Notes under the pieces: model-generated
Databases searched by the model: none
What the model was told of the DNA's origin: nothing
What the model saw: only the letters and a program-made list of their open reading frames with translations
Program-made: the position numbers and the translations under genes
Source: Calcarisporiella thermophila CBS 279.70
Lineage: Eukaryota; Fungi; Calcarisporiellomycota
Reading direction: 5' to 3'
DNA length: 64,000 nucleotides
NCBI RefSeq assembly: GCF_041956535.1
Contig: NW_027192200.1
Span: forward strand, 577,477 to 641,476
Part shown: positions 25,239-59,851 of the stretch, piece after piece
Numbering within the stretch: position 1 is the stretch's first letter
How the letters are laid out: the number at the start of each line of letters is the position of its first letter

Positions 25239-26494
25239 TCATTTATAAGCTGACCCAGCTCTCGAGTAATTGGGGTGAGTGCCCAAGCTCCCACCGGCAG
25301 ACACATAATTTCCATTCGAAGCGCCATCGAACGGATAGAGATCCAGCTCATTACTTCTCAAGCCATTACTTGTGCCCTGATGGGATGAGGGACGGGGACG
25401 CTGCTGTTGTTTCTCACGCAACTTCTGGATGACTGCAGTTCGTTGACTGTGTGCACGGGTAAGAAGTTTTCTTGTATCGCTCAGACGCATAAGATACTCG
25501 TTACTGCAGTTGATATTTTCCTGTTTCAAATCATGGTTATGTCGAGGAGCAAGACAAAGATCCCATTATATTTCCTACCATGACAAGTTCTCTAACGCGT
25601 GCCATTAATTCTCGTGGATCTCCGTATATATCGTTATCGATGTCATTCATAGCTTGATCATCATCTGCATTGAGTTCGGACATCTGTGCATCACTGCCAT
25701 TAAGCAAATCTTCGTAAGAGATGTCTTGATACTGTGGGTCATCTCCTTGGATAATGGCTGCAAATCGACTAAGAACTTTGTTGAGTGATTTTTCATTTTC
25801 GATCATTTCCATAGCTGTAGCCGCAAGTGATTCTAAGTGTTTGGATTGTAGGATTTTTCGCAACGGCCGTCGTTCTAGAAGATCTTCAGCCTTCTCTAAA
25901 GGGCCAAGTATTTCTGCAGAGTATTATACATAAACGTAAGATACAGCTTAAAACACTATATATACAAACTGCTGTTTCTGACTATACCTTCAATATTTAT
26001 GTCTCCGTAAGGATCTTCGTCTGAGCTATAATATCCGGCATTAGACTTATTCATAATTGTGGCCCTCTTCTTCCCGAATTTAGCGGCCTAATTATATGTC
26101 ATTCGTTTTTTTTAAAAAAAAGAATTTAAGTACTCAGTTGTAAAATAAGGCGTTGCAGACTTGATTCTCTACATTAAAGTCATCTTCGAATCCGATTGCC
26201 GCTCGTAATCTCCTTCCATTGCCGACGTAAGTTGCTCCAATCTTCAGTATTAGCCAAAATCAAACGAAAAGAGTTAAAAATAATATGCTCATAAAGAGGG
26301 AAGGAAATGAGCGTGTTTCGATGGAATAAAAAAAAGGATATGTTTATTGCCACGATTGTGGGGCACGAGACCAATGTCCTCAGGTTCGCTGGTGTCTGAT
26401 GCCGTATCAAGAGAGAGTTAGTAAATTGGTGAGATATACACCACCACTGTATAATGAATCGCGAAAAATTGAATAGCCTGATCCTACCTCCCAT
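25239..26494 (-). CDS. RXT2: RXT2-like subunit of the Rpd3L/Sin3 histone deacetylase complex
   Basis: NRGNKLK (restored across an AT-AC intron), DPYGDINIEEILGPL and AMEMIENEK match the RXT2 N-terminal domain. The start exon ATGGGAG|gtagga is a best guess. Confidence 0.75.
26247..26341 (-). other. U12-type AT-AC intron (95 nt) in RXT2
   Basis: 5'SS ATATCCTTTT, TTTTTAAC branch-like motif at 26280-26273 and terminal AC. Splicing gives AAT AAA C|TG AAG = NRGNKLK. Confidence 0.88.
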
Positions 26495-26634
26495 TGTGTT
26501 CTTAGGGGAGTATCCTACTACGAAGAAGTAAGAGAGGAAGTTATGACTGCTTGTTAACAATTGAACAAAATTTCAGAGTTTTAAGATAATTTGATTTTAT
26601 GTAGACGGGGTTGATATTTCGCGTACTTGAAAAC

Positions 26635-28522
26635 ATGAGCAACATTTACGTCCAAGAGCCGCACACAAGGTAATTGCATTGTATAGGAGCTGATAGTATT
26701 CACAAGCTTTACTCATCTTCGACTGTTTTAGTGGGAAAGTCGTTCTCCATACTACTTACGGGGATATAGATATTGAATTGTGGTCGAAGGAGACACCGAA
26801 AACATGTCGTAATTTTCTTCAACTGTGTCTTGAAGGATATTATAATGACACTATATTTCATCGGATCGTGCCTGAATTCATCATTCAGGGTGGCGATCCA
26901 ACCGGCACAGGATCAGGCATGTCGCTTTTTGTGGATTTTTATATATATATATTTCTGACGACATTTTGTCAAATAGGTGGAGAATCAATATATGGGAAGC
27001 CGTTCGCAGATGAGTTCCATTCTCGTCTACGTTTCATTCGACGTGGTTTAGTGGCTATGGCCAATGCAGGACCAAATGATAATGGGAGCCAATTCTTTAT
27101 TACTCTAGCGCGAACGGATGAGCTGCAAAACAAGCACACCATCTTTGGAAAGGTATTTTTTTGGGTGGGTGACGCTGTTTTTATGATTTCGCTCTAACTT
27201 ATTTTTATTATAGGTAGTTGGGGACACTATTTTTAATGTGATTCGCATGGGCCAACTAGATATTGATAGTAACGAGCGGCCGCTCTATCCACCAAAGATA
27301 ATTACTACTGAAGTGCTTAACAACCCCTTCGATGATATCATCCCCCGTATGACGCCTGCTGAAAAAGCGGCACTAGAAAAAGCAGAAGAGCTAGAGAAAC
27401 AAAAGGCGAAAAAAAAGAAAGAGAAAAAGTATCTACGCTTTTTTTCTATTGACGCCATCCTTTGTTACTAATTTATCTGCTTTAGAAACTCAAATCTGCT
27501 CTCTTTTGAAGAGGAAGGCGATGCTGAAGCAGTCAGGGTAAAAATCAAAAGTAGCCATGACCTTCTGAAAGATGATCCGAGACTGAGAAAAGCGGAAGCA
27601 GTGGAAAGTCAGAAAGCCGCTATGAAAGAGGGGGAAAAAGCAAAAGTGCGTGAGCTAGAACAGAGGGTTAAAGTGGCGTCTTCGGATGTAACAAACGCCG
27701 ACGATAAAGACGATGAATCAGCGGCGGAATTCGATCGACGGATGCGAGAGTCTGTAAAAGAGAGAATGGCCGGAAAACAAGAGAAGAAATTGGATCAAAG
27801 GTATTATTTTTTCGCTTGCTAAGAAGTGAATTGTAAAGAAATTTAGTCCTCTCTTATTTACAGGGAAGTTGTGCGGAATGAGATTGATAAAGTGAAGCAA
27901 GAGATACAGGCGCTTAACAAGAGAAAAAGTGAAATGCAGGAAAGGGAAAAAGAATCCAAAAAACCGAAAGTATCCATGTTAGAGCTTGAGCGCCAAAAGT
28001 ATCTCAATGGGAAACAACGTGCGACCTCAAGAAAGGATAGCAGTCGAGAAAATGAAGTAGGATCATTTCATATCCTTTTTTTATACAATCTATTTGCTAA
28101 TATTTCTTTTCATTTATTCTGAATAGCTCATGAAGCGATTCAACTCTTTTACAAAAAAACTCTCCCAGGCTGTCAAAGAGAATAAATCTGATGATACAGA
28201 GCTCCCCAGACAACGCCCCGAGCCCTCCGGAAAATCCTGTGAACTACATGGAGTACCAGGCTGCGAATCGTGTGGAAATGCAGAGAATGCCAATGAAACT
28301 GAAGAAACAGACGAAGGCTGGATAACTCACGTTATGATAGCAGAGAAAGACAGAAAAGGCAAGGATCTTATGCAGCGTCAGGAGAGCGTCCATGACTATG
28401 TAGTCATAGATCCTCGGGAGAGAAAAGAGCAGGCTCTGCGAAATGAGAGAGAAAAACGGAGAGGAAAGAGCTCGAGGGATAGGGCGAGTTCGAAAGAGCG
28501 CTCATATGAAAGGAGATCTTGA
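26635..28522 (+). CDS. CWC27: Spliceosomal cyclophilin CWC27
   Basis: MSNIYVQEPHT, IELWSKETPKTCRNFLQLCLEGYY, DEFHSRLRF, NNPFDDIIPR and DYVVIDPR. Confidence 0.95.
26917..26976 (+). other. GC-AG intron (60 nt, in frame, stop-free) in CWC27
   Basis: TCAG|GCATGT ... aaatag|GTGGA. Removal restores GGDPTGTGSGGESIYG. Confidence 0.82.
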
Positions 28523-28652
28523 AATTTTGCTTATTATTCATGAATTGCTCACCACATTAATCGAACTTTTATAAGAGTAAATATATACACGTGCATTTGG
28601 CAAATGTTTATTTATTTAGGTTTTTTTTTTCTACATTTTTAATTAACCGTAA

Positions 28653-31452
28653 TTACGAAATCTTCATCATGTCATCAACTTGGGAATCAAACGTCACACT
28701 CTCCTCTCTCTCCAAAGTCGTATTCGCTTCAGACGAAACATCTTGCTTGTCCAAGATGGCTCGATATCTTTTTTCGAAACTGTCTCGATCCGCTACCAGA
28801 TTGATAGCGCGCCAGTATAATTCTAATGATTTCTGTACCTGTTGGGTCGAATTGAGGAAGTTGATATACTCCAGCCAGATATCTGAATCATCGAAAAATA
28901 TAGCGTTACTGGATGAGAATACTTAGGGCATGAAACTATGAAACTCACCTTCAGAATCCTCTTTTGCCCTTAGGGCCATATCATAGATCCACTCAACCCG
29001 ATCTTTAACAAACTTATTTAGAGATGGAGTGGGATGCTGACCGTTGCACTCTGAATCGAGCTCGAGTTTAACACAGTGTTGGAAAAATGAAAGCGGGGGC
29101 GTGTTTTTGATAAGCCTAGGTGAATAGCGAACCAAATTCAATCTTTCCAAAAACGACCAAGCACCGATGTTTGCTACTTACTTTTCGTAGACCTCTCTTC
29201 CCTTTTGAATACCGCCTTTTTCGACGGCCCATTCAGCATAGCGATTAAATACTAGCTCCTTGATCGAAGTGACTTCCGCGGCAATTTTGCATTTGGTGTA
29301 TAGACGATTTAGATCTGAGACAGCGTTCTGAAATCAACGTGAGCGCCGTTAGTACCAAAATATAAGAAACAGCAAAGATAGATGTATGCGAAGAATAAAT
29401 ACCGTAAAATATTTTTCAATGTCTGGGACTCCCAGTTGATTGTTTCGGGACAGAAGGAAGATCCAATCAAAATAAGAGCTCCATATAGCGAAAGATGAGG
29501 GATTATGCGTCAGGGCTTTTGAATATAAATCTAAAGCGGAATCTACAAAACAAACGTGGTGAATATCTTAAAAAGTGGATGGGAAGAGAATTATTGTTAC
29601 CATCCGTAATGCTTATCAATGTCAACCAAAGGGTTGGTTCTTCTGGATGTGCCTCCGTGCCTCGTGTGGCAGTAATGCGAGCTGTTGAAATAAACATGAG
29701 ATGCATGAATTGTATACTTTGACACGAGCAACCTACTAACCATTATTAATATCATCTTCTCTAAGGTATTGTTGCACAACAGCCGAATATACTTCTTGGG
29801 ATGCATATCCCTGCTTCTGTGCCGATTTGAAGACCGATGATATTGATTTGGAAAGATACAATCGCTAATTGAAAGGATAAATAGATGTTAGAGACGGTTT
29901 GAATGAAAGATCAGGCAAATTATATACCAGATTGGGTTCCGACACTTTTGAGTACCATTGACTCAAAAACTGAATATAGAGAAGACACATTTCGCTTGTG
30001 GGAATTTCCTATTGAAGTAAGTTTAGGATTAGCAGATACACATGAAGCAGAGAGCATTGAAATACCTTTAATGATTTATTGAATTCTTCAATAGATTTGC
30101 GGATTTCGGGGATGAGTAGTGGGCTTTCGGTATCTAGGGTTGGCACGTTAACGTGGCGGGCTGCGAGAAATGCTCTGGCCCTCGGGTCTTCAGGAAAATC
30201 GCGCTCAATGCTGTAAAAACAAATACTTAAATATCACTTATTATAAAGGAGAAAATACAATATACCCACCTTGCAAAAATTTCATTTTGACCCTCTTCAG
30301 TATCTGAAAATTGACGGTAAATGTCCACAAATTTCTCTCTAAACGAGAGGCTATTCGGATTAGCTAGAGGAAATACTTGCAGTTATTTACGAGATAGCCG
30401 AGAAAAATATATGTATATATATACATACCATCAATTGCGTTTTTGTAAACAATCTTTGCGAGCGCACCGGATAAAATAGGGTTTTGCTCATTTTTAAGTG
30501 CGCTAGTAATATCTTCGGATAATTCGTTTGCGGTTTTCTAAGGTTGAGGGGGAAGAGTTAAATTAAACATTTTCATATAGAAATATAGAAATATATTTCT
30601 ACTTTTATCTTTTCCACATAGGCTAGCTCGAGTCTAAAATATTCGTGCCATAATTGCTCTTTCTCAGGATTAAGCCGCAGCCCTCTTTGCATCAGAGCTA
30701 GGATATGGGAATTGCGATCAGTCTCGTGGTTTAGCTATAAATATAAAATTCATACTTCTAGCCGCGACAATGTTAGCATTTTCTTCAAACTCCCATGATG
30801 CAGCGAGGATCCATAGTGAAGTTTTCGAAGGGTGCAGCTGAATTGCTCTGTTTAAAAATTAGCAAACCAGTTAAGCATATGCAGCTATAACGCTATAACG
30901 CTATAACGCTAATACGCACTTTGCAAACAACTTGCCGAGAGTTTTACTTGCACCAGAGCTTTTAGCAAAGTCAATGTATTGAAGCCAAAGGCTCACGTCT
31001 CCACCGAATTTACGGAGCGCTCGTTCGAAAATAAAATTAATCCTTCTTACGCCGGCGTAATCTGAAATCGACGTTTTGGATTTTATATCTTAAAATTTGG
31101 AAAAATAATAGGAGTTAAACCGGAATTCGTTCTATGCTAATGTACATAGAAGTATAATCTATTACCAAGCCGAGACTTCCTTTTCTTCCTTAACGCTTCA
31201 AGATTCATTTCATATTCAACATAGCGTAAGTAATCAATTTTTTTGGAAATCCTACGCTTCAGAGCGTATTCAAATTTTGTGCGTCTCTTAACGATCGACT
31301 TGACTTCGGCCTAAGGAATTAAATAGTAATTGTAGTGGAGACAAGATTCAAGAGTAAAATGAGCGACCCACCTTCGAAAAGATCCCCTTGTTCTCGAGAT
31401 CCTCGAGTTCGGGGACCATTTGCTCGAGATAGTATTGAACTGTATCCGCCAT
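28653..31452 (-). CDS. UTP6: U3 snoRNA-associated protein 6 (HAT repeats), many exons
   Basis: MADTVQYYLEQMVPELEDL, IVKRRTKFEYALKRR, WILAASWEFEENANIVAAR and LMQRGLRLNP. Confidence 0.92.
30884..30911. repeat. Short tandem repeat (GCTATAAC)x3.5 in a UTP6 intron
   Basis: gctataacgctataacgctataacgcta seen directly. Confidence 0.8.
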
Positions 31453-31619
31453 GTTGTAATAATATACGCCACGATCGGTAGTGGAGGAAATGCAATAACT
31501 TCAAAGAGTAGGCTTCAATAAACACAAAAATAGTGACTATTTTTGTGACTTTCAACTCAATCTAATATGACTTTAGTGGAATTCGATGCGAAACGACCTA
31601 TACTTTTAGGAAGTCGAGT

Positions 31620-34580
<2,961 letters not shown>

Positions 34581-35020
34581 AGTATTTCAGTTGATTCTGA
34601 CAAATCAGCTCAAATACTTGACGCTAAGGGAGGTTCCTCCTCATGCTCTGTACTATAATAAATACTTCTGCTTGAAAGGCAGCTGTGAGCCTATAGGCTA
34701 TAGTTTTATAATCAATTTATATACCAAGCTTTTCTAAATACTGCAAAGGAGGTCCTCCATTAATTCCATTAATTTGCGGGTGTAATCAACCCTTTGACTG
34801 TTGGCTTTGACATTGGCATTTTTGGGTCTACCCAATCAGGTATATAAATAAGGCATTGAAACATTGCTCAAAGCCGATCGTACCTAACCACTAGTAAATG
34901 CATTCCAACGCCAAACCTGGAATTTTTCCGTCGGAAATTATCAGAAATATAAAATGGATATCCCCCTTAGTCCCCATACTTTTTTTGTTTTGAACTGTTT
35001 TGTTTGCAACTATTCAAAGT

Positions 35021-35572
35021 ATGTTTTGGCGTGTTTTTTTCCTGCTCTTTCTCTGTCTGCCCGTCGTGCTAGCTAACAATTCCGCTTTTCACGAGCTTCT
35101 TCGTCGGCAACAGCAGTGCGACTACAGCAAGTGCAATGGTAACTTGGCAAATTTTGGAGGTGTATTGTGTTCAACTAGGTCGTTTAACCTTTATCTTCTT
35201 CTTTGCACTCTAGGCGTTTATGATTCAATAAAGAACTGTCAGCAGAGTACCAACTTTACTAACCCGAATGATCAGACCGCAGTTACGAATTTTGCAAAGG
35301 TATGGACCCTTTTCTTCCCTACTTTGAAGTCGAATATTAAATAGACGTTATACTTTTAGTGCCTTTGCAACACATCTAACTTCGGAAGCATGTACAGCTC
35401 TTGTATTCAGGCGTGCGGAACCGCCGCTAATACTGGGGTCACCGCTGAACAACTGAATACCCAGTGTCAGCAAATTAACAACGGCCAGCCATTAGGAACC
35501 AAGTCGGATGCAGCAGCTCTTAAGCCTGTTGCGGCCTTTGCACTTGTGCTTGCTTCATTTTTCATTCTTTAG
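35021..35572 (+). CDS. Small secreted 8-Cys, probably GPI-anchored, CFEM-like protein, 3 exons
   Basis: Signal peptide, RR site, 8 Cys including CLC and CIQAC, and hydrophobic C-terminus after SDA. Introns 35139-35213 and 35300-35359. Confidence 0.75.
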
Positions 35573-35829
35573 ATCGTTTTTTCTAGATTTATTTCCCTAA
35601 TTCTTCAGCGCTTTGACAACAATCTTGTAAAAATTCCCCATCTTCTTTCTCCGCGCATTTAATTAAATGAGTTGAAATAGCATCGGAACCTTATATGATA
35701 TCTATATCTGTACCTTGTACAGTTCAAAAAATTATTTATTTCAAAATGCAGAAGAAAAAGAGCCAAAAACTGAAAAGAAAAATTAAATATTTTTCACTTT
35801 TGCCATGAACGTAGAGTAGAGAATATTAA

Positions 35830-37677
35830 TTACATAACAGAGCAGTTGTCATTATCAGGTTTGCCTGTGCGTGTGTGCTCCCTTCGAGCAGGGCGAGCTC
35901 CCATATTTTTGAGCTCGGCCAAGCGAGAAATAGCCCGCTTGTTACCTTGTCCAGCTGCACGCAAGTACCATCGCCGGGCTTCTTCCAAATCTTGCTTCAC
36001 GCCAATGCCCACCTCAGAGTAGTAGCCAACTGCATACTCAGCTTTGGATAGGCCTTTATCTGCTGCACGTCTTGCCCACAAATATGCCTCTGTATCGGAT
36101 TGTTTAAGAACACCTTCTGAACCTGTAAGATACCAACCAGAGAGCGCCAGCTCGGCTTCTGGATCACCTTGTTCGGCTGCTCTGGAGTACCAAGCTATTG
36201 ACCTGCGCGGGTCCACGGGGCAAGTTATCAACCCATACTCGTAGCAGCACCCCAATTTGAACTGGGAAGGGGCATATCCAAGTTGGGCTGCCTGTGTGAA
36301 TAATTCCCTTGCGTAAGCTTCGTCTGGAATAACAGAAGGCACACCAGATTTTTCATAGCAAAGTCCAAGCTCGTGCAGAGCATGAGGGTTATCCTCATCT
36401 GCCTGGGCTGCCGCCCGCTTGAGCCATGTCACCGCTTCGCGTGGGTTTTTCTGTTGTGAGAGTAAACCATTAAGTAAGATCATTCCGAGTTTATACATGG
36501 CAGCTGTCTCGCCCAGTGCTGCAGCTTTCCTGAAAAACTGAACAGCTCGGTGGGGGTCGCGTTTTGTTCCAGCTCCTACTTCATAGCACACAGCTGCTCT
36601 GTAAGTAGATGATGCATGGTTTTGCTTCGACGCCTGCAGATATAAGCTAAATGCCTTGTCGTGATCTACCGCAAGGCCATATGCTCCGGTACCATAGCAA
36701 TTGGCGAGGAAAAATGCAGCCTCAGGATACGCTGGTTTCCCTAGTCCACTTTGTGATCCTAACCGTTTGACAATTTTCATCGCCTCTTGGGCCATACCAT
36801 CACGAACTCGCCGTGCCCGCTTTGCATCTTGTGTTTGGTCAGCAAAATAAGGTGCAGAATGCAACAAGAATTTGGCATAACGGAGTTGGATTTTTGGATC
36901 ATTATTCGTTCGTGCCTCCTCGCGATATTTTTCTAGTAATTCTCGAGTTGGGGCTGGGAATTCCTCCTCTTTCTTTTTTGCAGGCTGTTCGGCAGCGCTC
37001 AACTCGCTATGTATTGTATTCGAGCGGGCAATGGGGTAGGGTTCACTCGAATACTCAGCGTTAGAATATTGTTCGGGAGCGTATTGATCACCATAATAGT
37101 AATAATCTTGAGCATAGCCCTGAGCATAGGCATCTTCAGATCCATGTGGGTAAGGTTGCGGTGGATAACCTGGTTGCTGCTGGTAGTATTCGTTCGAATA
37201 ATACTGCTCGTTATAATCTGCAGAAGGATTGACACTGTTAGGAGGATACTCATAATTGTGGTTGTTTGCAGAATGGTATCCGTCAGGTTGCTCATAATTT
37301 TGATGAGGAATATAGCCTTCGTTTGCGTAGGCCCCTTGTTCTGGATACTGATGGTGTCCATATTGATCGTAGTGAGCGTATGAATTCTGCGGGTGCCCAT
37401 ATTGCTGATCGAAATGAGCTACATCATGCCTAGTTTCCTGATATTGTTCCTGGTAACCGCTATATGCTGCTTCATCATATCCTTCATAGTTAGTATGAGC
37501 GGGAGCAGCAGAAGATATTTGATGATGAGGCGGTGATTGGTGAGGAGGGTACTGACTCGACGATGAAGGAGCGGGTGAACGCGATCGAGAATCATGGCCA
37601 TCACTGATTTTCAGTTTTTCTAGACCCAGTTGTTCGGGAGTAGGCGAGTTCGATCGGATGGGTGGAGCATTGCTCAT
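35830..37677 (-). CDS. CHS4: Chitin synthase activator Chs4/Skt5 (Sel1 repeats, CAAX)
   Basis: Tandem Sel1-like repeats, ELALSGWYLTGSEGVL, C-terminal CSVM prenylation motif and a Y/Q/P-rich N-terminus. Confidence 0.92.
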   Translation of the reverse strand: MSNAPPIRSNSPTPEQLGLEKLKISDGHDSRSRSPAPSSSSQYPPHQSPPHHQISSAAPAHTNYEGYDEAAYSGYQEQYQETRHDVAHFDQQYGHPQNSYAHYDQYGHHQYPEQGAYANEGYIPHQNYEQPDGYHSANNHNYEYPPNSVNPSADYNEQYYSNEYYQQQPGYPPQPYPHGSEDAYAQGYAQDYYYYGDQYAPEQYSNAEYSSEPYPIARSNTIHSELSAAEQPAKKKEEEFPAPTRELLEKYREEARTNNDPKIQLRYAKFLLHSAPYFADQTQDAKRARRVRDGMAQEAMKIVKRLGSQSGLGKPAYPEAAFFLANCYGTGAYGLAVDHDKAFSLYLQASKQNHASSTYRAAVCYEVGAGTKRDPHRAVQFFRKAAALGETAAMYKLGMILLNGLLSQQKNPREAVTWLKRAAAQADEDNPHALHELGLCYEKSGVPSVIPDEAYARELFTQAAQLGYAPSQFKLGCCYEYGLITCPVDPRRSIAWYSRAAEQGDPEAELALSGWYLTGSEGVLKQSDTEAYLWARRAADKGLSKAEYAVGYYSEVGIGVKQDLEEARRWYLRAAGQGNKRAISRLAELKNMGARPARREHTRTGKPDNDNCSVM

Positions 37678-37975
37678 TTTTATCGTGTGCTCTCAAAAAT
37701 ATTGGCTCTAAAATTGTTTGTAAAAATTAATACTTAGGAATTCTACCAGTAAGTACTTGAGTTTATATATACATCTATTTTGAATTATTGTTTTCTACAC
37801 ACTCTCGGTATTTATTGAAGTTATAGGTTGTAAGCTGCAAAGAAATTATAGTATTGTGATGAACCTGAAATATGTTCCCTCTGTTTTGTCTGGATGAAGC
37901 AAGAAACACATCTGCGCCACCCAACCCGTAAAGATTATTCTTCACTCGTTAGTTCTACATGTGCATTACAAAAAT

Positions 37976-46900: not shown

Positions 46901-49847
46901 ACAGCTCTCCGAGCTGTTGAGAATAGCTCTTTGTAAGTATCAAGAAGTTTTATCTTCGAGATTCTGTCGCTTACCGGTTTTTCCATTCATTAGATGCCAG
47001 TTCTGGGAGAATTCGAGTAACGCATTTATTGGAAATTACGAATGAGCTGACTACGTTCATGCAAATTCTTTTCTCTTTGGAATACAAAATCAACAACGGT
47101 GTACTTTTGCATATATTTGACTGGTTACGAATTAATCCACGCGGAACTAGCGATATCATCGAAGAACTATATCATATTTTTGAAATTATTAATTTGCCTC
47201 ACGATATTCATGGTCTAACAACAACTCATAGCTATGCTAAAGTGGTAAGGCTCATAATATTCCATTTTATTACTTATCACTTCTAACTAGCCATATCATA
47301 TTTTAGCATGAAAATTTCCAAGCATTTATTAACCGTCGAAAAAATAGCGGTGAAATCCACTTGATTCTACTTTTCGAGGACCTCTTTGGAAGTGTGGAAA
47401 CAGCAATAAGAAAATTACAAGTATATACTAATTGTTTAACAGCAAAAACTGTAGCTATTGGTAATTTATTGTTTTTTCACAGGACATTGCTACTTTGATG
47501 AGCCAGGCAGGAATTTGGACATTTGTACTCAGCGAAAATACCTTACCGACCCTACATCTCTATAAATATTTGGTAAATACTCTATTTGAATTAATTTAAT
47601 AATATACATGATGCTAAATTGCTACTTTAGTATATACGAGCAGTTTGCTGGAGCTGCTTGGAATTTTATACGAATCAGATCATCAAGAATGGGAATGAAA
47701 AGTATATATCTAATCTTGGTGTTACTACTCAATATCGTATGAAGAACAACACCGCTGCCGAAACATTGCGAGAGTTTTTAACTTGGAACGCTCAAAAGAC
47801 CTTATCTCCATTCCTGACAAATATACTATCTACTATTCAAATTTCGTTTGCTCAATTACTCCCAGGACGGCGAGATACAATCGATATTGATAATATTATA
47901 TCGACGATGGTTGAGGAGAAGATTATTTCTTACTCTTCATTCATATCGCTAAGCACTGATTTAGAAACTTATATGAATTTCAGCTCGATGCGGACCATTC
48001 TCAATATTGTAAGTCATTATCATTCCCATTTCAAGAGAATATAATTTTTATCATCATGCTTTCTTAGGTCAATATGCGCAAAGGTCAAGTGGAGACGGAG
48101 TTTCAACAGAAACAGTTTGAATTACTTCGTCTACAATGGATTAGTCTCTCCCATTCACGGGATTCGCATGTGCGACAACAGGTGATATTTTTGTGGCTAC
48201 TTGCATATTTAGCATGGTAGCTTATATATCTTAATATAGTTTTTGGCGAATCTCAGTACTGACCTGCAGCGATTATTGACTCTACAAGTCAATCTTCGAA
48301 GTCTAGCTGAAGGCCTACAGCCATTTGAAAATAGTTCTTTTGATCAGAGTAGAATAGCACAAACTGGCTTGTCCTCGTCGATGGCTGCTTTATCCACCGA
48401 GCAATTCTATGATACTATAAACTCTCAGCGAACCAAGCTAATGTTTAATTTTGAAAAGGTATTTTGAACTTTTTGAATCATTTTCACTCCATTAATTCTC
48501 ACCTCGTAACACTTCTAGATTAATTTTCTCACTGAAATATGTGAGCTTATATTAAATTTTGAAAACTTGCGCAGTCCAAGAGAGCGTACACAAATCTTAG
48601 GAGAAAATCTGGCTCGGTTATTAGAGAGTAGTAGGGATAGGCAAGTTCTTTAACTATTAGATTTTATAGTATATATATTGATTTATTTAAATTATATAGT
48701 GAACCAGCGGATCAAGTAAATACAGTATAATACTACAAATCTATTTGACTAATATCATCGTTGATGACAATTTTTTGGTAGTCAAATATAGAGGCCCAAC
48801 CCAATATGGATACCATAACCATAGTAGACACGCTGACCGATTTACGAGAGAATTGTGATGATATGCGTGCTCTAGTGACTGATATTACATCACTTCTTGA
48901 GCCGATATCTACCATTGAGACGGATGTTGATTTTGATGAAGAATTACGCGTAGCCAAGGAAAAATCTGAGGTATGCGATTATTTGAAGTCTTATTATACT
49001 CTATTATACTATTTTCACTTCGCTTTTAGGGAATATTTTCGGAATGGTCGAATTTTGAAGCCGCTTGTGACGGCCTGGACAAAATTTTGGGACAATACGA
49101 TACAACAACTGTCTCTGAGACTGATTCGGTGGATTCCAATCAAATTTTGAGAGGTTCAAATGAACTTTCTAAAGAAGCGGTAAGTCTACTTCTACATTAA
49201 TTTATATGAATCAATTCATCGATATCTGACTATGTTATACAAGCCTCATGTCGTCAGTGACCTAACGGAAAGTTTAAAGCAGTTTTTCGAAATGCTTAAG
49301 GCTTTTGAAGGCTCATTTATATCGCCCATTTCTCCTGATCAATTAACGCCGATAAAACAAAGCTTTGAGGAACGATATCAAAGCTCACATGAACTTGGTT
49401 ACGAGAAGCCATCAGCCATGACCCTCTCCATCTCTATAAATAATCGCCACGAATCAGATGGCATGTCTCAGCTATCATATTCTGGAGTTATCTCAGATGC
49501 TGATGCAGATGCACCAAATAGAAAGAAAAATCAAGGCAAAATAGGTAATTTTTGAGAATAATAGATATAATACTTCGAAGATGAATATTAATCATGGCTA
49601 CTGGTTTAGAGCAACGCAATGAATACGCTGTTAGTGTACTGAGACGAGTTAGAGAAAAATTAGAAGGGATTGATTTTGAAAATAAGATACAAGCAGTTTC
49701 AGAACAAGTAATGGCTTTCCTATTATCCCCTTAGTCCGCTTTTTTATTAATGTAGCTCTGATAAACCAGGTCTCGAATGCAATCAATGAAGCGATGAGTA
49801 TAGATAATCTATGCGCGATGTATGAAGGCTGGACACCCTGGATATAA
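37976..49847 (+). CDS. SMG1: SMG1 PIKK kinase (nonsense-mediated decay), about 30 introns
   Basis: FLFKGLEDLHLDQRIMQFL, GLGDRHMDN, HIDYNICFEKGRKLRVPELVPFRLT, long insertion between kinase and FATC, and FATC DNLCAMYEGWTPWI*. Start codon inferred from exon phase. Confidence 0.92.
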
Positions 49848-49992
49848 TCCCCCTTATCCTTTAGTTTCCATCCACCAAAAGGTATTTTTGATTTTCTTCT
49901 AACAGCAAGATAAAATTCTTGGGTATGCAAGTGAATTCAAAGATCTTGGTGGAATGTCATTATATAATACAAAAAATATTGAAAGTATTAAA

Positions 49993-50810
49993 CTATATAG
50001 AAATTTGACTGGCAAATAAGAATAGTAAGAAAATTACAAATATACCTAAAAGTTCTAATAAATTATTCAAATGAAAACAACAAAGAACGAATATAAAAAC
50101 GAGAAAACAAGGAAAATATCCCTTCATTACAGATATATATTCAACTTGGACACCAGCGTCTGTCTCATCCAACACAATTTTTGAGCTAGCTTGGAGTTGG
50201 CTTAAGATCCAATTGTTTTCTCGAATAATGGAGAGAGTCTTGTTTAATTTCACGAGACGCTCTTCCGCTAAGGCATTATCGTGGGTTATATCGTTATATG
50301 TATTTGACATTATATTATCTAATTCCAGCGCATTAGACGTGTTTAATGGCTAAATATATAAATTATTGTTAAAAGTTGGAAGAAACGCTATAATAGGTGA
50401 AGCTTCACCTCGACGCCTAATGGAAGTGAATTTCGCTCGATATAATCACTTTTATCCCCTCTACCAGAAGCCGAGGGTGAGCGCATATCTGAACGAATAT
50501 ATCGGTGGGCGGAATGCATCGTCCGTTTGATTTTTGAAAATTCATGACTAGTGCCAATATATTTGGGAAAAAGAGGAGTCCAAACTCTGGTTCCAGGCAT
50601 CGCAGGTGTCTTAGGTGTATTAGTAGCTATATGTCGGTTCATTTTTCTACTATCGCTCTCCTTGCGATTATCACTAACATCGTCGCTTTGAGGTATTTTC
50701 AACTTGTTTTGATTTTTTGATTTAATCGCCTGATTGAGTTTCTGAGGATAGGGTGTCCATGCAGTAGTACCCGGCATCTCTCCTGCTGGAGGAACTAATG
50801 TCCAACTCAT
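49993..50810 (-). CDS. Hypothetical protein with C-terminal hydrophobic segments, 2 exons
   Basis: ORFs 50388-50810 and 49993-50310 join in frame via a GT-AG intron (about 50350-50408). Internal repeat MPGTxxWTP. Confidence 0.55.
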
Positions 50811-51594
50811 CTCAAATTTGTGTAAAGAAGAATCGCAGACAAAAGCTATTTAAAAATTATAGTTTTAAATATTTCATACAATTAGAAATAATATTCTTAA
50901 TTACGCGAATATTTTAAAGCTATTGCGGCAGGCGATAAGCCACATTCGACTCTATTGTTACATTCTGGACTCCCTTGTGAAAATATTTTTGGCTTTAACA
51001 ATAACGGTCAAAAATCTATAAACGATATATAAACGATATATAAATTACTGCGATAAATATGAGGAAAAATTTATTGAGTGATTTGAATACTCTTTAGAGC
51101 TTTTATCCAAGTTAACTTTAAAGATTACGGTACTCAAAAATAAGGCGCCTTATATACTACGCAAAATACTTAATGTACAGTATATTATCTCAGTAACCGC
51201 AGAAAGTTGAATCAGATAAAACACATAGTATTTTAGTAACTCAGATATACGAGATAAATACTATACTTAGTCGCTTGAATAGATACTCATACGTATCCAT
51301 TTATATCACACCTGATTCCATCTATTAATAAAGCGCTGCCTAACCAAATAAACGCAAAAAGCCCGCTATAATTGAACGTAGCTAGAAAAGAAGCCAAAAT
51401 AAATAGCTTTATCTTGTACGCATTTGCTTCGTAAGTGAGAAAGTTGAAATTGAAATTGTGAAATAAAATACATAATTATGCCTTGAACTACTCATGACAA
51501 AAGCTGACGTGCCAATTTGACAATAGAGTCAATTGACACGTCAAACTTGTGCTTGAGTATAAATACGCAATTTTTAGGATGATTCAAGTCAACA

Positions 51595-52308
51595 ATGGCG
51601 AACGATACATTAGTCTATATTTCAGAAAATTCTAATGAGCAAAATTTCCCTATTAAATTCTCCTGTGTATCTGGTGAGATTGTATGGGGACAACTGCATA
51701 CTCTCTTAGAAGGCGTGTCTACCAAGCATCACGATAATGCAAGGCCACCGCAAAACTGCCCTGTCGGCGGTACAATTGTCCAACATGAATTTCGCTTTAG
51801 GGCAGCTGCAAGAAAAGGGATATGGTTAGCAAAGAAATTATTTTTAGGTGGAGACCACATCGGTTTTATTGTGCATCATGAGGATATTGTTGCCGAAGAT
51901 TTAATTCAGCAAGCCCATGATGTTGGCCTTTCTCTACATAATGAACATAGTAATCAAAATATTATATATATAAATCGATATGATTGGGGTTGGCATCATT
52001 ACCCGAAAGATGCGCCGAGGGGTCCAGATCCGAATTTGAAATATATCCAAAAAAGCTTTCCATATGCGCAAGAAGACCTACTAGCAGCACGTTTTATGTT
52101 TGCTGATGCGTTGCATGCTTTTGAGAGTAAATGTAATGAATATGGAGTTCATCTTACTGTCTCCGGCACAGAATATGAACAAGGGTGGCTATTCTTTAGC
52201 GGTAAAAAGTCTGAAAGCTATCCTAATTCAGATGAGCTGATAGCAATGTTTTATGACGGTGCCTACACTGATCTTGGAAAATACTCTGGCATCCTACCAA
52301 CCCTCTAG
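51595..52308 (+). CDS. Intronless hypothetical protein (237 aa)
   Basis: Clean ORF with acaATGG context, TATAAATA at 51558-51565 and globular composition. Confidence 0.8.
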   Translation: MANDTLVYISENSNEQNFPIKFSCVSGEIVWGQLHTLLEGVSTKHHDNARPPQNCPVGGTIVQHEFRFRAAARKGIWLAKKLFLGGDHIGFIVHHEDIVAEDLIQQAHDVGLSLHNEHSNQNIIYINRYDWGWHHYPKDAPRGPDPNLKYIQKSFPYAQEDLLAARFMFADALHAFESKCNEYGVHLTVSGTEYEQGWLFFSGKKSESYPNSDELIAMFYDGAYTDLGKYSGILPTL

Positions 52309-52666
52309 TGATGTGATAGTTCTGGATTCCTATAAAAGATTTGAATTTAATTTTTTATTGTCGAATAAAGAAATACGTTATCATTGGTTTATTAATAATC
52401 ATTCTAGTAATGATTAAATAATAATGATAACGGTCAATTAATATTATTTCTTTCTTGGTTAGTCCATAATAATTAATTTACCTCGCGGTAGTTGATATGA
52501 ACGATCATAACGACATTTCCATTAGTTTAAAAAAACAAAAGTTTGAACATGCCAAAAAAAAGCTAATCATGGTTGAGCTTCCTAACTCAATAATTTTGTG
52601 AATATATATGACATAAAATAGCTCAAGATAAATACAACAAAAAAAGAGTAAAAAAGTGGAATAAGA

Positions 52667-53338
52667 CTAAGAATCTACTACTTCCATTGTGCTAACTCCA
52701 CCCTGTTTTCCTTTATCTGTAGTTAGCCCAACAGCTGCTTCTGCCTCTTTTTGAGTATAAGGTTCTTCCTGGAGCAATTTTAACCTTTACAAAATAAACA
52801 CGTTTCAAAAAACTTGTCCATTAGAAAAATATATTAATAGTAATCCATACCTCTTTTTATGCAATTTATTTTGCCTGTGTTCATCAAGGGCGGTTTGGGA
52901 TTGAAAATGCCGACTAATAACAAAAGCCATTTTGTAAAAATATTACCAAAATATACTAGAAAGTTAAATACTCACGCGCAAGCTATGCAATAAAATTGAC
53001 CCAGCCCCGGAAGATCAGGATCAATTGGAATTTCGTTGAATTTCTTTTGGTTTTCAGGTTTTAGATCCTCATGTATCTGGTCTAAGTGTAGAAAGAATTA
53101 AGAAATTACAAAGTTAAAGATACTATGCTAAACTTTTGAATAAAGAAAAGGACGATTTAAATAAATAAATAAATAAAACGAAAAGGATATCTTTAGTATA
53201 GCGGCGGGTCCGGAATTTTCTTGAGTTGTCCCTAATGCTTTTATGAGTTCTTGATCTCCTGATTCTGTTTATATAATATTGTCAATTTTATCACAATTAT
53301 TAATAATAATAAACTAATGAGAGCTCTTACCTTCCCAT
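52667..53338 (-). CDS. BUD20: C2H2 zinc-finger ribosome biogenesis factor Bud20/ZNF593, 5 exons
   Basis: [45 protein letters not shown] and [23 protein letters not shown]. Absent from the ORF track because the exons are short. Confidence 0.93.
53088..53190 (-). other. U12-type AT-AC intron (103 nt) in BUD20
   Basis: 5'SS ATATCCTTTT, TCTTTAAC (53120-53113) and TTCTTAAT motifs, terminal AC. Splicing gives AAA G|AC TTA GAC CAG = KDLDQ. Confidence 0.92.
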
Positions 53339-53421
53339 GGTAATAATTGTTAAGAAACAAAAGGTAGTAAACACCTATTTGTTTTCAATAACAATGCAGT
53401 CACTCTCATTGTGGCTTTTAA

Positions 53422-53427
53422 ACGCGT
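53422..53427. promoter_or_regulatory. MCB-like element ACGCGT in the BUD20/ASF1 bidirectional promoter
   Basis: ACGCGT 56 bp upstream of the ASF1 ATG in an AT-rich 144-bp spacer. Confidence 0.4.
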
Positions 53428-53482
53428 CCTAAAAGGCAGAAATTTAGCGTGAAAGTAATTTTTACCCTTAAGATTTTGAAGT

Positions 53483-54250
53483 ATGTCAATAGTTAATATT
53501 ACCAACGTTCAGATCCTCGACAATCCGACACCATTTCTTAATCCGTATCAGTTTGAAATTACATTTGAATGTATTTCACCTTTAAAAGAAGGTAATTTGT
53601 TATATCTTACTCATTCTTTATCTGTATAACGCTGGATTGCTCACCTCAACACAGATCTTGAATGGAAAATTATCTATGTTGGTTCGGCTGAAAATGAGGA
53701 GCTTGATCAAGTTTTGGATTCAATTATGGTAGGACCTGTCCCAGTGGGAGTAAGCAAGTTTCTTTTTACGGTAAAAAAAATTTTTGTACGTAATATTTTT
53801 CTCTAGTTAAATATGAGGTTGTAAATAGGCTGATCCACCCAATATCAAACTACTCCCGAAAGATGACATTTTGGGGGTGACCGTAATCTTAGTTACATGT
53901 TCCTATAAAGATCAGGAATTCGTCCGCGTTGGTTATTATGTCAATAATGAATATATCGATGAGGAATTGCGTGAAAATCCGCCTGCTGAAATCCAATTAG
54001 ACAAGCTTTACCGGAATATCCTCGCTGAAAAACCTAGAGTAACGCGATTACCAATTAAATGGTAATAGTTTTTGTGTTTAGTTTGGATTATACAATTATT
54101 TACTGAATTTTTTATTATCCATCCCTAACCTCTAGGGACTCTCCGGACGCGGGAGAAGATAATGAGGGACAGGTAACAGTCGATTCTGAAGCTAATGACA
54201 CGATAAAATCAGCAGAGCAATCAGAAAGTAGTCAGGCTATATCATCATAG
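53483..54250 (+). CDS. ASF1: Histone H3/H4 chaperone Asf1, 4 exons
   Basis: [37 protein letters not shown] and [14 protein letters not shown]. Confidence 0.97.
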
Positions 54251-54384
54251 TCCTATTTTCACTCAAATCTAATTTAATATTTTGAATAGCTTATGTTCTT
54301 ATTTTCATTATTCCCTTTTTACTCTGTTTCCTAAATTTCTATTAATAAATATTAAAATAATTGCAGAAAAGCCATTTAATCTAT

Positions 54385-55796
54385 TCATAAATTATAATAT
54401 GCAAACGCACGAAGAGACATCTCATATGTAACAAACGTCGCAGCAGCAGCGGGGATCCTATTATACAAAAAAAACAATATACTTTATCGAAAAATTATAA
54501 GTCCGAATAACCACAAGTATTACGCTCTGAGAACTGAGATAATTGAAGTGTATACATATATAAATACAGTGAAGTTAGCAAGCATTGAATTCGAAAGAAA
54601 AAAAAGGAAATTACTTGTAGGGGAAAGACCACGTATAAATGCTCTAGCACCCTCTTGATGATATATCGATCGAATGGTATCTACAATATATAGCGCCCCA
54701 CGAGGGGTATCTTTGGCGTGTTGGACCTAAATATTAAAAATCAGGCTTAATTGTCATATGTGATGAATTTTTTTATGAAAGAATTACCCGTGATTTCACA
54801 ACATCAAGTGGATAGCAACACAACCAATAACTTATTCCCCCACATGCACCAGCAATCATTAAACGAGATGGTTCTAACTGCGAAGGATCTTCTCCTGGAG
54901 GTGTGAGTTTTCGTTTCATAAACTCGAATCCAGTATAAAACCCAGCATATCTAAAGGGATAAATTGATTAGTTTACTCTACACAATATAATATTACTATT
55001 GATTGACTTGGAAAAAAGAAAATTACGCTGGAGTTTCGCGTGCAACTGTAGCCCAAAATCCACGAAACAAACCTCTTCGTATACCTGCTTCAGCTATTAA
55101 TTTTTTGGCGCAATCAATTGGACCGCTGTATACTTTCCTTCCTCCGTATTGGCCTTGCAATTTTACTTTGAGCAATTCAACAGGAGATGCCAAAATACTA
55201 TTTATCGCACCTATTCAAAAAGTTTTGAATAAATATATTGCGCTCAACTTCACTATTATGGAGTACCTGCACCCGCACCAGCAATGGCAATTTGCCAAAG
55301 CCCGAGTACCTGATTTGGCTGTGCCTGTTGTATAGCTTTTAGCCTCGAATTGGCCGCAAAAAGCAACGCGTTAACAGCACCAATGCCCACCAGTGGACTC
55401 GCCATTCCTTTTTTTTTGGAACGAGGTCATTTTAAGTTATCATGCAAAAGAAAGAAATTATCCACCTTTATATAAACCACGCACACCCTCATATTTGAGA
55501 GTCTTCATGAAACAATCCAAAGGCCCCTTAAAGTGCCCTCCTTTGCCTTGAATTTGTAATCGCGTCTTCACAGTATCCAAAGGTTGACCTATTAGGCATT
55601 TATAAAACATTAAATTCATTCAAGTCAACTATATCGGGACTGATTAGCATATCTCATACCAACAATAACCTGTGCCATTCCAGCAAAACTTTATTAAATA
55701 ATTCAATAGCAAATTAGTTTAATTATAACGACTTAATAAATTATTATAATATCCTTACTTGCCGGCAGCAAAATCTTTGACCACTTCGAGGGACAT
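54385..55796 (-). CDS. Mitochondrial carrier (carnitine/ornithine/YMC-like subgroup)
   Basis: Three PxDxxKxR-type signatures ([31 protein letters not shown]) plus GMASPLVG and ARETPA. Confidence 0.9.
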
Positions 55797-56402
55797 GTTG
55801 GTGTAGTGGTCAATCACTAAAATGCGCCTAGTTGTAACTGAAAATATTCATAATAGTTAAAATTGCGCAATAAAATGTGGGGATGACAAAATTGTGCAAA
55901 ATATCACGTCACATATATAAAAGGTATATGATGAAATCCAACAATCGATTGACAGAGAGGATATACTGTTTATTCCTATGTTAATTTTTATTGAACTTTC
56001 TAGTTATAACGAAAATGGAGTATCAATGCACAATAGATAATGAATGATTTAGTAATATATGCATATTTGTTAATAATAAATCTAAGGAGAGTCAAATAGA
56101 GTTATTTTAGTTATGGATGAAAAGTTTTGAAATTTCAAGGAAATTCAATCAATCTAATTCGATAGAAAAAAATAGTAAAATGGAAAATAATTTTTTTTAT
56201 AAATTTTTTATTAATTTTTTTATTTTTAAAAATTTTTTCTTATTTTTCGACTAATCGCATTCCATTTATTCGAATATTTTATACAATGGGCAAAATGATT
56301 TTTGAATATTCCTAATCCGCTTATAGCATACGATTTATTGTGCTTTCAGGAATTCTTAGTAAACTTATTTATAATTTTATTTTACGAAAAAGACCATTCT
56401 AT

Positions 56403-57349
56403 TTATTTGATGAGAGCGTTGATACCAGTAGGAACAGTACAAGTACCTAGATGAGTCCGAATGAGATGTATTTGGCCATTTTCAGGGTCTATCCACGCAG
56501 CTTCACGTTGCTCTGTTGTCTTTAAACCAGGCTGAATAGTTTCCCATATCTTCTTCTTAGGGTTGAGCACAGCTTCAGGGGTACCTTCTTATAAAATCAT
56601 CAAAATAATTGTTGAGTTGAGACTTTACAATAAATTGATTACTTGCAATCGATAGTATACCTTCAAAACCCTCAAAGTACACCCGATCCCCAGGTTTAGA
56701 ACCTTTAGGTGGATCAACTAGCTCAACCTTCCCCTCTGCCGTTGTTGCAGCTAGCACCATGGCAAATGATTTCACGCCTCGCATGCTTTTACATTGATTT
56801 TACAATTTAGCTTTGAGATTGAAAAAATATATATAATTGAAACGTACTTAACCGGCTTGAGATTACACACTAAAACCACATCTCTCTTTTGCATCTCATC
56901 TAGTGGGATATGATTCACTAATCCACTGACAACCGTGCGTGGCTCTTCTTCTCCACAGTCGATCTGCTCAACATACAGAGAATCGGCTTGAGCATGTTTT
57001 TCAGCTTGAATAATATGACCAACTCGTAAATCGATCATCGAAGGGACAATTTTAGCTGCTGCAATAATTGAAAAAAAATTAAATATTATATTAAATAGTC
57101 GATCAGAAAATAATGCAAATGCACCTGCTGATTTCTGATCATTTTTGTTAGCTACTTTGTTCTCGGCCTTTTTTGCTGCTTTCTCAGCCTTTTTGTTGGC
57201 TCGTATCGTATTAGAATCCTCTACCTTAACGGTTTCAACATTAACCTGAGTTTCGGGGACAGGGTTAACCTAGCAACATCAATTAATTTTCTGTACTTGT
57301 CTTGTACATTTCTCTATGATTGCCTTACTTCTAGGTTTTGATTCTCCAT
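56403..57349 (-). CDS. Stand-alone ARC1/EMAP-II-type tRNA-binding OB-fold protein
   Basis: [55 protein letters not shown] and [13 protein letters not shown]. The short Lys-rich N-terminus and the start codon are uncertain. Confidence 0.85.
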
Positions 57350-57898
57350 GTTTCTAGGCTTCTATATTGCGTTTGTTGACAAGTAAAGGTCACTTTAACC
57401 CGAGTATTTTAGTTTGTGGCTTAAATGATTCTGAACTGAATCAATACTTATAAATTTTATTGTTGGTTCAGTTACATGAATTGTTGCATATGGGTACAAG
57501 GCTATGAGAGTCTTGGCGGCCTACTTGACAGGAAACTTACTAAGTGTTTATAATATATATATTATGTGCGAAAAATAACCCTACAAAGATACTAATTCAA
57601 ATGCAAAAATATATCCTTTTGTTTATAATATAAGAGTGCTAATCATGCTTTATGTATTGTGCTAACTAGACTTATCAAGAGAAGATATATTGATTCCTCT
57701 TGTCCCCAAGGTCTTGTGGGCACAATTTTCTCGCCGCATTCATAGGAGAATGATAAATTTATTGACTAGCTAAACTTATTCACAAAGAGAAACATAGTAA
57801 TAGAGTTAAACCACAACCAAACTTTGGATTTAAATATATATAGTAAATTGACGCATGAATGAAATAATTCTGTCATTCTAATGAACAGCACATTTGAT

Positions 57899-58051
57899 TT
57901 ATTTGGATTGACAACAGGAACACGAGCAGCTTCCCTTAACGCATCTGTATCAGCAAATCATTATTGGAGATGTGCTAAATTCCAAGAATAGTGTCATTTC
58001 TTTGACTTACTGGCAAGCTCCAGAGGTGGTACAAGGGCAGGTATTTTGCAT
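57899..58051 (-). CDS. Metallothionein, 28 aa, 2 exons: MQNTCPCTTSGACQCVKGSCSCSCCQSK
   Basis: accATG context, exon 58051-58011, GTAAGT...GCTGAT...CAG intron 58010-57945, exon 57944-57899. Has 8 Cys in CxC/CC motifs and no aromatic residues. Confidence 0.85.
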
Positions 58052-58258
58052 GGTGTTTATGTTAAACTTCTTATAGAGTGGTAAAAGAAAGGTTGATGAG
58101 AATTGTTTGAAGAATCTCGTGAATTATAACGGGTAGCCTTTTATGCTCTCAACCTCTGGTCACGTTCAATTTTTTTTTGTAATTCCTGAAGAATTCAAAC
58201 TGCGTGCACTTATTAATATGTTAATAATTTATATTAGTTTATGATTTTTAACATCGCC

Positions 58259-59851
58259 ATGTTTTTAGAAGATGTTGAGAGATTAAAAACTTATAGGCAG
58301 AATTTCATTAGCACTCTGAGAAATCGTCAGCTTCATCGTGCCTCAAAAATCAAAGGATTATCGTCGCCTAGAACCATCCAAAAGTACAAATCTATCGACC
58401 AAATTTCTAGCTTACTCTCTGAAGAAGCTGTCAGTACAATACTTGATGGGATTCTTTTTTCTTTGGCACTGATGACTCTTAATAACGTATGTTAGCAAAT
58501 ACCCAACTACCAGTCTACACGCAACGATTATGAGCAAAATTTTGTCGATTCTGGTGCAAGACCTCATAATTTTATTCGCGATACAGATTTACACGATCGA
58601 TTCGATGAATATCCAAAGCTTAAGGAACTTACTCGACTCAAGAACGAACTTGTAGAAGCTCGAGCAACACCTCCTACATATCTCAAAGCCGATCTACGAA
58701 ATTTTGACTTTAAACGGCTTGGTTGTAAATTTGATGTAATATTAATTGACCCTCCACTTGAAGAGTAAGTATATATTTCACCTCTATTGTAATGTATCAT
58801 ACGCTAAAATGTATAACCCTGTAGATATTGTCGCCGCTCAGCTACAGTGGCTGGAAAGGCAAAAGAATATTGGACATTCGACGAAATCATATCTTTTTTT
58901 TCCTCTTTTTATATTGGATTTTCTTTGATATATTCAATTAACTACCTATTCTTAACAAATTGTTTTTTATTACGGAGCCCTGCGAATAGAAGAAATTGCG
59001 GCAAACCCATCCTTTATTTTTATCTGGGTAGCAGATAACGAAGGACTTGATCGTGGTAGAGAATTATTATTGCGATGGGGTTATAGACGATGTGAGGATA
59101 TTGTATGGGTGAAAACGAACAGATCATGGGAAGGTAGCCACCTAATGGAATCCCGCTCCGTACTTCAGCACACCAAAGAGCATTGTCTGATGGGCATCCG
59201 TGGAACGGTTAGGCGAAGTACAGATGGACACTTTATCCACTGCAATGTCGACACTGACGTTATCATATCTGAAGAGCCATATTTTGGCAGTAAGATTTTA
59301 TTACTTATACCAATTATGAAAAAATTTCTTTATCTCTATCAATAGGCACTCGAAAGCCAGAGGAACTATACCATATTATTGAACATTTCTGCCTAGGACG
59401 CAGACGTTTAGAATTATTTGGTGAGGTGAGTTAAAAACATATAACCGTACATTTTGATACGATCTATCTATTACTCCTTTGGTTATTATAATATAGGATT
59501 ACAATATCCGCCGAGGTTGGTTGACTATCGGAAAAGATATATCCATCTCTAATTTTGATTCCAAGACGTACTCTTCCTATTTTCTCAATGATGGACATCT
59601 ACTGGGTTCTACCCAAGGTATGTTACTCGCATTCTATTTATCATTGCCGCACTAATTTACATATATTAGATATCGAACTTCTGCGACCAAAATCGCCAAC
59701 TCGAGACCCAAATCAAAAGGCAGGAAGCAAAAAGAAAGCTAACCAGGCTCTAGTTAGGGGACCACTTCATCCCGGTTTAATTGCATTGCAACCTCCTAAT
59801 GTATCTGGTCTGAACTCTCCTTTTAAAATGCATATTCCACCTAGATGGTAG
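58259..59851 (+). CDS. METTL14: m6A methyltransferase subunit METTL14/Kar4 (MT-A70 family)
   Basis: [85 protein letters not shown] and [13 protein letters not shown]. Confidence 0.95.
58889..58973 (+). other. U12-type AT-AC intron (85 nt) in METTL14
   Basis: 5'SS ATATCTTTTT, branch TTCTTAAC at 58949-58956, terminal AC. Splicing gives WTFDEI|[19 protein letters not shown] in frame with the next ORF. Confidence 0.9.

Follow-up and report, generated by a model that had tools for sequence, protein, structure and literature searches.

Three AT-AC introns in a 64-kb stretch of the Calcarisporiella thermophila genome are probably ordinary, ancestrally retained minor introns

Results

Predicted AT-AC junctions in three genes

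We analyzed a 64-kb stretch of the genome of the fungus Calcarisporiella thermophila, referred to here as the window (G000:C10:577477-641476), which contains three genes whose coding sequences are each predicted to be interrupted by an intron that begins with AT and ends with AC: an RXT2-like gene encoding a subunit of the Rpd3L histone deacetylase complex, BUD20/ZNF593 and METTL14. The assembly (JAZGQU000000000; PMC11393059) comprises 28.16 Mb in 116 contigs. C. thermophila represents the sister lineage to the remaining Mucoromycotina (PMC10079182), in agreement with an initial annotation of the window that had placed the DNA in an early-diverging fungal lineage. All three genes lie between 24 and 60 kb of the window, together with SMG1 and a CWC27-like gene, and this part has a guanine-plus-cytosine (GC) content of 34-42%, compared with 45-54% in the flanks.

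To assess the junctions, homology searches were run exon by exon on each gene. The initial claim that each of the three genes requires an AT-AC intron held up, with the coordinates confirmed and a conserved motif restored at every junction (Table 1). For RXT2, the public protein P0001, to which PF08595 is assigned in its public record, matched window positions 25242-26396 with 100% identity in each exon (tblastn), and its sequence over the junction is HNRGNK|LKIGATYVG. The join of VPHNRGNK to LKIGATYVGNGRRL was achieved by the AT-AC pairing only, and (V)PHNRGxKLK spans the junction point in all distant Rxt2 proteins compared. A single RXT2 exon taken alone gave a weak match to the RXT2_N profile; otherwise, PDB and Pfam returned no usable match for either the RXT2 exons or the short upstream exons.

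In BUD20, the exon downstream of the intron begins LDQIHEDL, and its first residue aligns to residue 19 of Chaetomium Bud20 and residue 18 of yeast Bud20, as well as to human ZNF593. An AG at 53082 was rejected as the acceptor since its use would delete the conserved LD, and no GT donor was found near the donor site. In METTL14, where likewise no GT donor was found near the donor, alignment places the third residue of the downstream exon at L219 of human METTL14 and at position 33 of the MT-A70 profile. The upstream exon ends ...EYWTFDEI at the junction, and the ends of the preceding exons presumably retain the spacing of human METTL14 to within two residues. As judged from homology, each AT-AC junction is the sole one that preserves both the reading frame and the conserved motif.

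Table 1. Coordinates of the AT-AC introns, their genes and the minor spliceosomal RNAs (window positions unless a contig is given; nt, nucleotides)
Feature	Position	Strand	Size or structure	Details
RXT2-like gene	25239..26494	-	six exons	public model P0001 (VTP21DRAFT_991)
RXT2 AT-AC intron (U12-type)	26247..26341	-	95 nt, phase 1	donor ATATCCTTTTTTTT; AC end at 26247
BUD20 gene, 5' part	52976..53338	-	exon 1 53331-53338, U2-type intron, exon 2 53191-53264, AT-AC intron, exon 3 52976-53087	exon 1 ATGGGAAG
BUD20/ZNF593 AT-AC intron (U12-type)	53088..53190	-	103 nt, phase 1	donor ATATCCTTTTCG
METTL14 exons around the AT-AC intron	58825..59289	+	58825-58888 and 58974-59289	
METTL14 AT-AC intron (U12-type)	58889..58973	+	85 nt, phase 0	donor ATATCTTTTTTTT (C6 -> T)
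U11	C6:999547			53.1 bits, above Rfam gathering score
U6atac	C2:193832			47.6 bits, above Rfam gathering score
U12	C1:926673			44.4 bits, E 2e-6, below gathering score (53)
U4atac	C11:412021			42.9 bits, E 6e-5, below gathering score (53)

Signals of the U12-type class

The three introns show the features by which introns of the minor (U12-type) spliceosome are recognized, and their initial assignment to that class is thereby upheld. First, all three donors follow /RTATCCTT, in which one C at +5/+6 may be T: those of RXT2 (at 26341, minus strand) and BUD20 match the 9-mer ATATCCTTT, and that of METTL14 is ATATCTTTT. Second, each intron contains near its 3' end a degenerate, TCCTTAAC-like branch site complementary to the GUAAGGA of U12. 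These lie 27 nt upstream of the terminal AC in RXT2 (TTTTTAAC; likely site TATTATTTTTAAC), 10 nt upstream in BUD20 (TTCTTAAT; site TTTCTTAAT, with a second candidate, TCTTTAAC, at 26 nt) and 18 nt upstream in METTL14 (TTCTTAAC; site TATTCTTAAC), and their predicted duplexes with this genome's U12 range from -5 to -10 kcal/mol. In RXT2, the distal site pairs at -10.4 kcal/mol, compared with -4.6 kcal/mol for a weaker TTTGAT located at 13 nt. Third, the AT and AC termini give the correct frame, with homology across each junction. Homology at the three junctions, and for RXT2 also the public gene models, suggest splicing there, which would probably depend on the minor spliceosome.

The window contains 10 copies of the donor motif ATATCCTT, where 4.1 would be expected. 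Several of these were rejected: 44925 falls within the coding part of SMG1, 59540(-) on the strand opposite METTL14, and 41409(-) and 55749 either opposite coding sequence or at the end of a gene. Another candidate, at 57611-57671 (+), runs from ATATCCTTTTGT to GTGCTAACTAGAC within AT-rich sequence that precedes METTL14, close to a small metallothionein-like open reading frame and with no flanking coding frame; it could be an intron of an untranslated region or a chance match.

A perfect ATATCCTTT at 28070 (+) proved to be a decoy. It sits inside a U2-type intron (28055-28126, +; GTAGGATC ... CTAAT ... AATAG) of the CWC27-like cyclophilin gene, which joins SSRENE to LMKRFNSFTKK, and is a trap for the pattern-based calling of minor introns. 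The window's sole GTATCCTT, at 10433(-), was rejected as coding (HPYPY); it lies in frame within a U2AF35/ZRSR2-like gene (10200-10480, -), recognized by a CCCH finger ...TGVCPNGKHCTKLHPYPYHSSTIMVKNMY... followed by YSDEEIAEHFAEWFDDVYAEFNHFGRVIEFKV. This gene's real intron, GTACAA...AG, is of the U2 type; a CCCTTAAC occurs by chance close to its end. ZRSR2 is a 3'-splice-site factor of the animal minor spliceosome.

The RXT2 intron in other Mucoromycotina

We read the RXT2 loci of five other fungi at the HNRGxK codon. Four of the five loci share the intron at this codon and in this phase, namely those of Gongronella butleri, Umbelopsis sp., Absidia repens and Jimgerdemannia flammicorona. All four orthologous introns start with ATATCCTT, carry a TCCTTGAC or TCCTTAAC branch site (TCCTTRAC) 12-21 nt from the end and terminate in AC. 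At the Mortierella alpina locus, the coding sequence is unbroken at the intron position (L028:1427-1460), a precise loss of a minor intron relative to Calcarisporiella, Mucorales, Umbelopsis and Endogonales. Because position, phase and motifs are shared with four other Mucoromycotina, the RXT2 intron is, on this comparative evidence, an ancestral minor intron of the Mucoromycotina. In all five species that carry it, C. thermophila included, the public models splice it correctly; the suggestion that standard gene callers mis-annotate such introns is not borne out for RXT2, the gene to which this result applies.

Small nuclear RNAs of the minor spliceosome

The search for minor spliceosomal RNAs that the initial annotation had called for was successful: with Rfam models, a single copy each of U11, U12, U4atac and U6atac was found in the genome (Table 1). 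The two that score below threshold, U12 and U4atac, keep their functional boxes and Sm sites, with U12 retaining AUGAGUAAGGA. The 5' end of U11, AAAAAGGGC, matches the AT-AC donors. U4atac and U6atac are predicted to pair at -34 to -38 kcal/mol, with a compensatory change in stem I (U6atac GUUGGCA with U4atac UGCCGAC). The U6atac RNA (G000:C2:193832-193964; L003:1501-1633) reads GAGUCGAGAGA compared with the family consensus GAAAGGAGAGA, and no further U6atac gene whose box is canonical was found in the genome.

Minor introns across the genome

The initial annotation had extrapolated from the three introns to an unusually large minor set, about 2% of all introns. We addressed this with sequence read over 264 kb in total (the window plus 200 kb outside it, as 20 stretches of 10 kb) and with whole-genome motif counts, which were compared with reversed or swapped-order controls. 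The 9-mer ATATCCTTT occurs at 686 sites genome-wide vs. 415 in the reversed control, and GTATCCTTT at 347 vs. 297. Per 64 kb, the window holds 5 ATATCCTTT sites and the genome a mean of 1.6. If the window's density were extrapolated, ~880 ATATCCTTT sites would be needed for that class alone, more than the 686 that exist; this total caps the AT-AC class well below the 1-2% that the extrapolation requires.

Patterns combining donor and branch site gave a similar picture. ATATCCTT N{25,200} TYYTTAAY returned 123 matches, compared with 72 in the reversed and 115 in the swapped-order control; for the corresponding patterns with GTATCCTT and ATATCTTT, matches and reversed controls numbered 62 and 62, and 184 and 178, respectively. 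In the sub-population with a ..TTAAC branch motif 45-85 nt past the donor, ~23-25 AT matches stood against 8-9 in the swapped-order control, and GT matches numbered ~18. A calculation based on length excess gave 29 AT introns, 14 GT introns and 0 for ATATCTTT, the AT value being somewhat inflated according to the swapped-order control. No enrichment was seen genome-wide for ATATCCTT..TTTTAAC..AC (27 matches vs. 47 in the control), and a loose donor-plus-branch scan of the 264 kb gave 27 matches vs. 27 in reversed sequence. A crude regular-expression count of U2-type introns was uninformative, with the control exceeding the signal.

In a census of C1:1-1,139,059, all 24 perfect 9-mers were inspected, 16 of them ATATCCTTT and 8 GTATCCTTT. 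Among these, one was a certain minor intron, of the GT-AG type, and no clear AT-AC intron was seen in the 1.14 Mb; at the window's density ~36 would be expected [P(<=1) ~1e-14, Poisson]. The GT-AG intron (L010:4585-4702; G000:C1:253584-253701, +) lies in the N-terminal SPX domain of an SPX gene, where it joins MKFSHALKINSVPDWSEHYV to AYSNLKKIIYQLEKD; it runs from GTATCCTTTC to ATCCTTAAC, with a branch site 26 nt before AG. One site, in an RNA15/CstF-64 gene (L017:6914; G000:C1:824413, +), was ambiguous: a ATATCCTTT donor follows the RNA recognition motif ...FGFCEYYDPETAASAVRN and misses the frame to ...YDVGGRQLRVD. The remaining census sites were coding, antisense or non-coding. Candidates were rejected at L009:7559, where the open reading frame continues through the site, and at L020:1398 and L021:5009, where coding flanks are absent.

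The strict motifs led to an estimate of 15-30 AT-AC and ~14 GT-AG introns. Since the strict pattern catches three of four verified introns, a sensitivity known from these four alone, the motif counts correspond to perhaps ~50-100 minor introns in the genome. This would perhaps be ~0.1-0.2% of all introns, given a total of ~60,000 that is itself assumed, from an unverified 130-150 introns in the window and the five introns in the 283-codon RXT2 gene. The proposal of a U12-rich genome is refuted: the estimate falls well short of a minor fraction near or above 1%, taken as the mark of an enriched genome, in which minor introns make up well over 0.5% of the total, as in Physarum. The accompanying proposal of an AT-AC skew may survive in a mild form: an estimated half to two thirds of the minor introns are AT-AC (AT-AC:GT-AG between ~1:1 and 2:1), and the SPX gene shows that GT-AG minor introns exist. 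That none had been noticed in the window is explained by the small sample; AT-AC introns are also conspicuous by eye.

Discussion

The three introns are most probably ordinary U12-type AT-AC introns, retained from ancestors in housekeeping genes and forming a local cluster in a genome with ~50-100 minor introns, of which half or slightly more are AT-AC. If splicing proceeds as is established for U12-type introns, U11 would pair through its 5' end (AAAAAGGGC) with the ATATCCTTT donor, and U12 through its GUAAGGA box with the TTYTTAAY branch site, which precedes the 3' AC by 10-27 nt; U4atac/U6atac would then take over. A local chance cluster with an ordinary genome-wide share is one of the outcomes that the initial annotation had itself named as refuting its claim, and the window is a local cluster.

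This picture fits what is known from other lineages. As in Phycomyces blakesleeanus and Rhizopus, C. thermophila has RTATCCTT donors, TCCTTAAC-like branch sites, all minor small nuclear RNAs (snRNAs), tens of minor introns per genome and roughly similar estimated numbers of AT-AC and GT-AG introns (8 AT-AC vs. 8-10 GT-AG in Phycomyces); unlike in those fungi, the branch sites of the window's introns are more degenerate and, in two of them, up to 26-27 nt from the 3' end (PMC2846911). The fungal maxima are 0.554% (n = 249) in Basidiobolus meristosporus and 0.272% (n = 205) in Rhizophagus irregularis (PMC10639083). C. thermophila shares with both an early-diverging position, the full minor spliceosome and minor introns at conserved sites, but its estimated number and share lie below both, so it is not enriched. 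Its estimated AT-AC share, which resembles that of other zygomycetes, exceeds the ~26% of human minor introns, as does that of Blastocystis (~77%; PMC10639083). However, at ~50-65% AT-AC and with introns of 60-120 nt rather than ~40 nt, C. thermophila shows no sign of a transformed system.

Several points weigh against this interpretation. The genome-wide number is built on strict motifs with noisy controls, which makes the totals rough, and the intron total in the denominator is an assumption. U6atac has a divergent 5'-splice-site box, GUCGA, and the introns are still of the ATATCCTTT type. Finally, if 40-100 AT-AC introns were spread uniformly over the genome (Poisson model), 0.06-0.8 of ~500 windows of 64 kb would be expected to hold three, so the cluster may not be pure chance. 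As a chance event, it is unusual yet possible.

This last point bears on the strongest alternative, namely that the total is ordinary and minor introns are concentrated, for reasons other than chance, in an old, intron-dense, AT-rich housekeeping and RNA-processing compartment, here the window's 24-60 kb. The low GC content of this part and its content of SMG1, METTL14, CWC27-like, RXT2 and BUD20 genes agree with such a compartment, as do the improbability of three introns per window under the uniform model and further strict-pattern matches on contig C10, at 262010 and 448603. Minor introns are, moreover, found mostly in ancient genes (PMC10639083). Against this, 80-100 AT-AC introns in the genome would be enough for chance to produce one such window among ~500, and we regard the compartment as a possible but clearly less likely explanation than an ordinary set that happens to cluster.

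It is very unlikely that the major (U2-type) spliceosome removes the three introns, as it does a few AT-AC introns in animals. U2-type AT-AC introns have ATAAGT-like donors. Those seen here are ATATCCTTT or ATATCTTTT and match the U11 5' end, the TCCTTRAC branch site is complete in the orthologous RXT2 introns, and all four minor snRNAs are retained; these facts outweigh the degenerate branch sites TTTTTAAC, TTCTTAAT and TTCTTAAC and the divergent U6atac box, which would suit removal by the U2-type machinery. Least credible of all is genome-wide richness (~1-2% or more minor introns) with a strong AT-AC skew and systematic mis-annotation, which three AT-AC introns within 33 kb and the excess of ATATCCTTT over its reversed control seem to favor, but which conflicts with the shortfall of ATATCCTTT sites, a 1.14-Mb census free of clear AT-AC introns, a donor-plus-branch pattern scarcely above its swapped-order control, similarly numerous GT-AG minor introns and correct RXT2 models in five species.

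To our knowledge, the UCCUU of the 5' splice site is bound in all well-studied cases by an AAGGA box of U6atac. If the GUCGA box were real and lineage-wide, activation of the 5' splice site would work with much weaker U6atac pairing than in the textbook model, an idea that we put forward as a long shot. If true, the degenerate and distant branch sites tolerated here might be another facet of this relaxation.

A genome with 2% minor introns would be a fungal record and a useful model; the evidence says otherwise, and the main value of this analysis is to correct an extrapolation from one window. The three introns, as far as homology can verify them, add to the small catalogue of minor introns in early-diverging fungi. 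They are unexceptional examples of a familiar intron class, and retention of the minor spliceosome was already known for this lineage. Annotation of the C. thermophila genome must permit AT-AC junctions, as some public models already do. Together, these results confirm that the sister lineage of all other Mucoromycotina has a complete minor spliceosome and show that the RXT2 intron is ancestral in Mucoromycotina and was lost in Mortierella.

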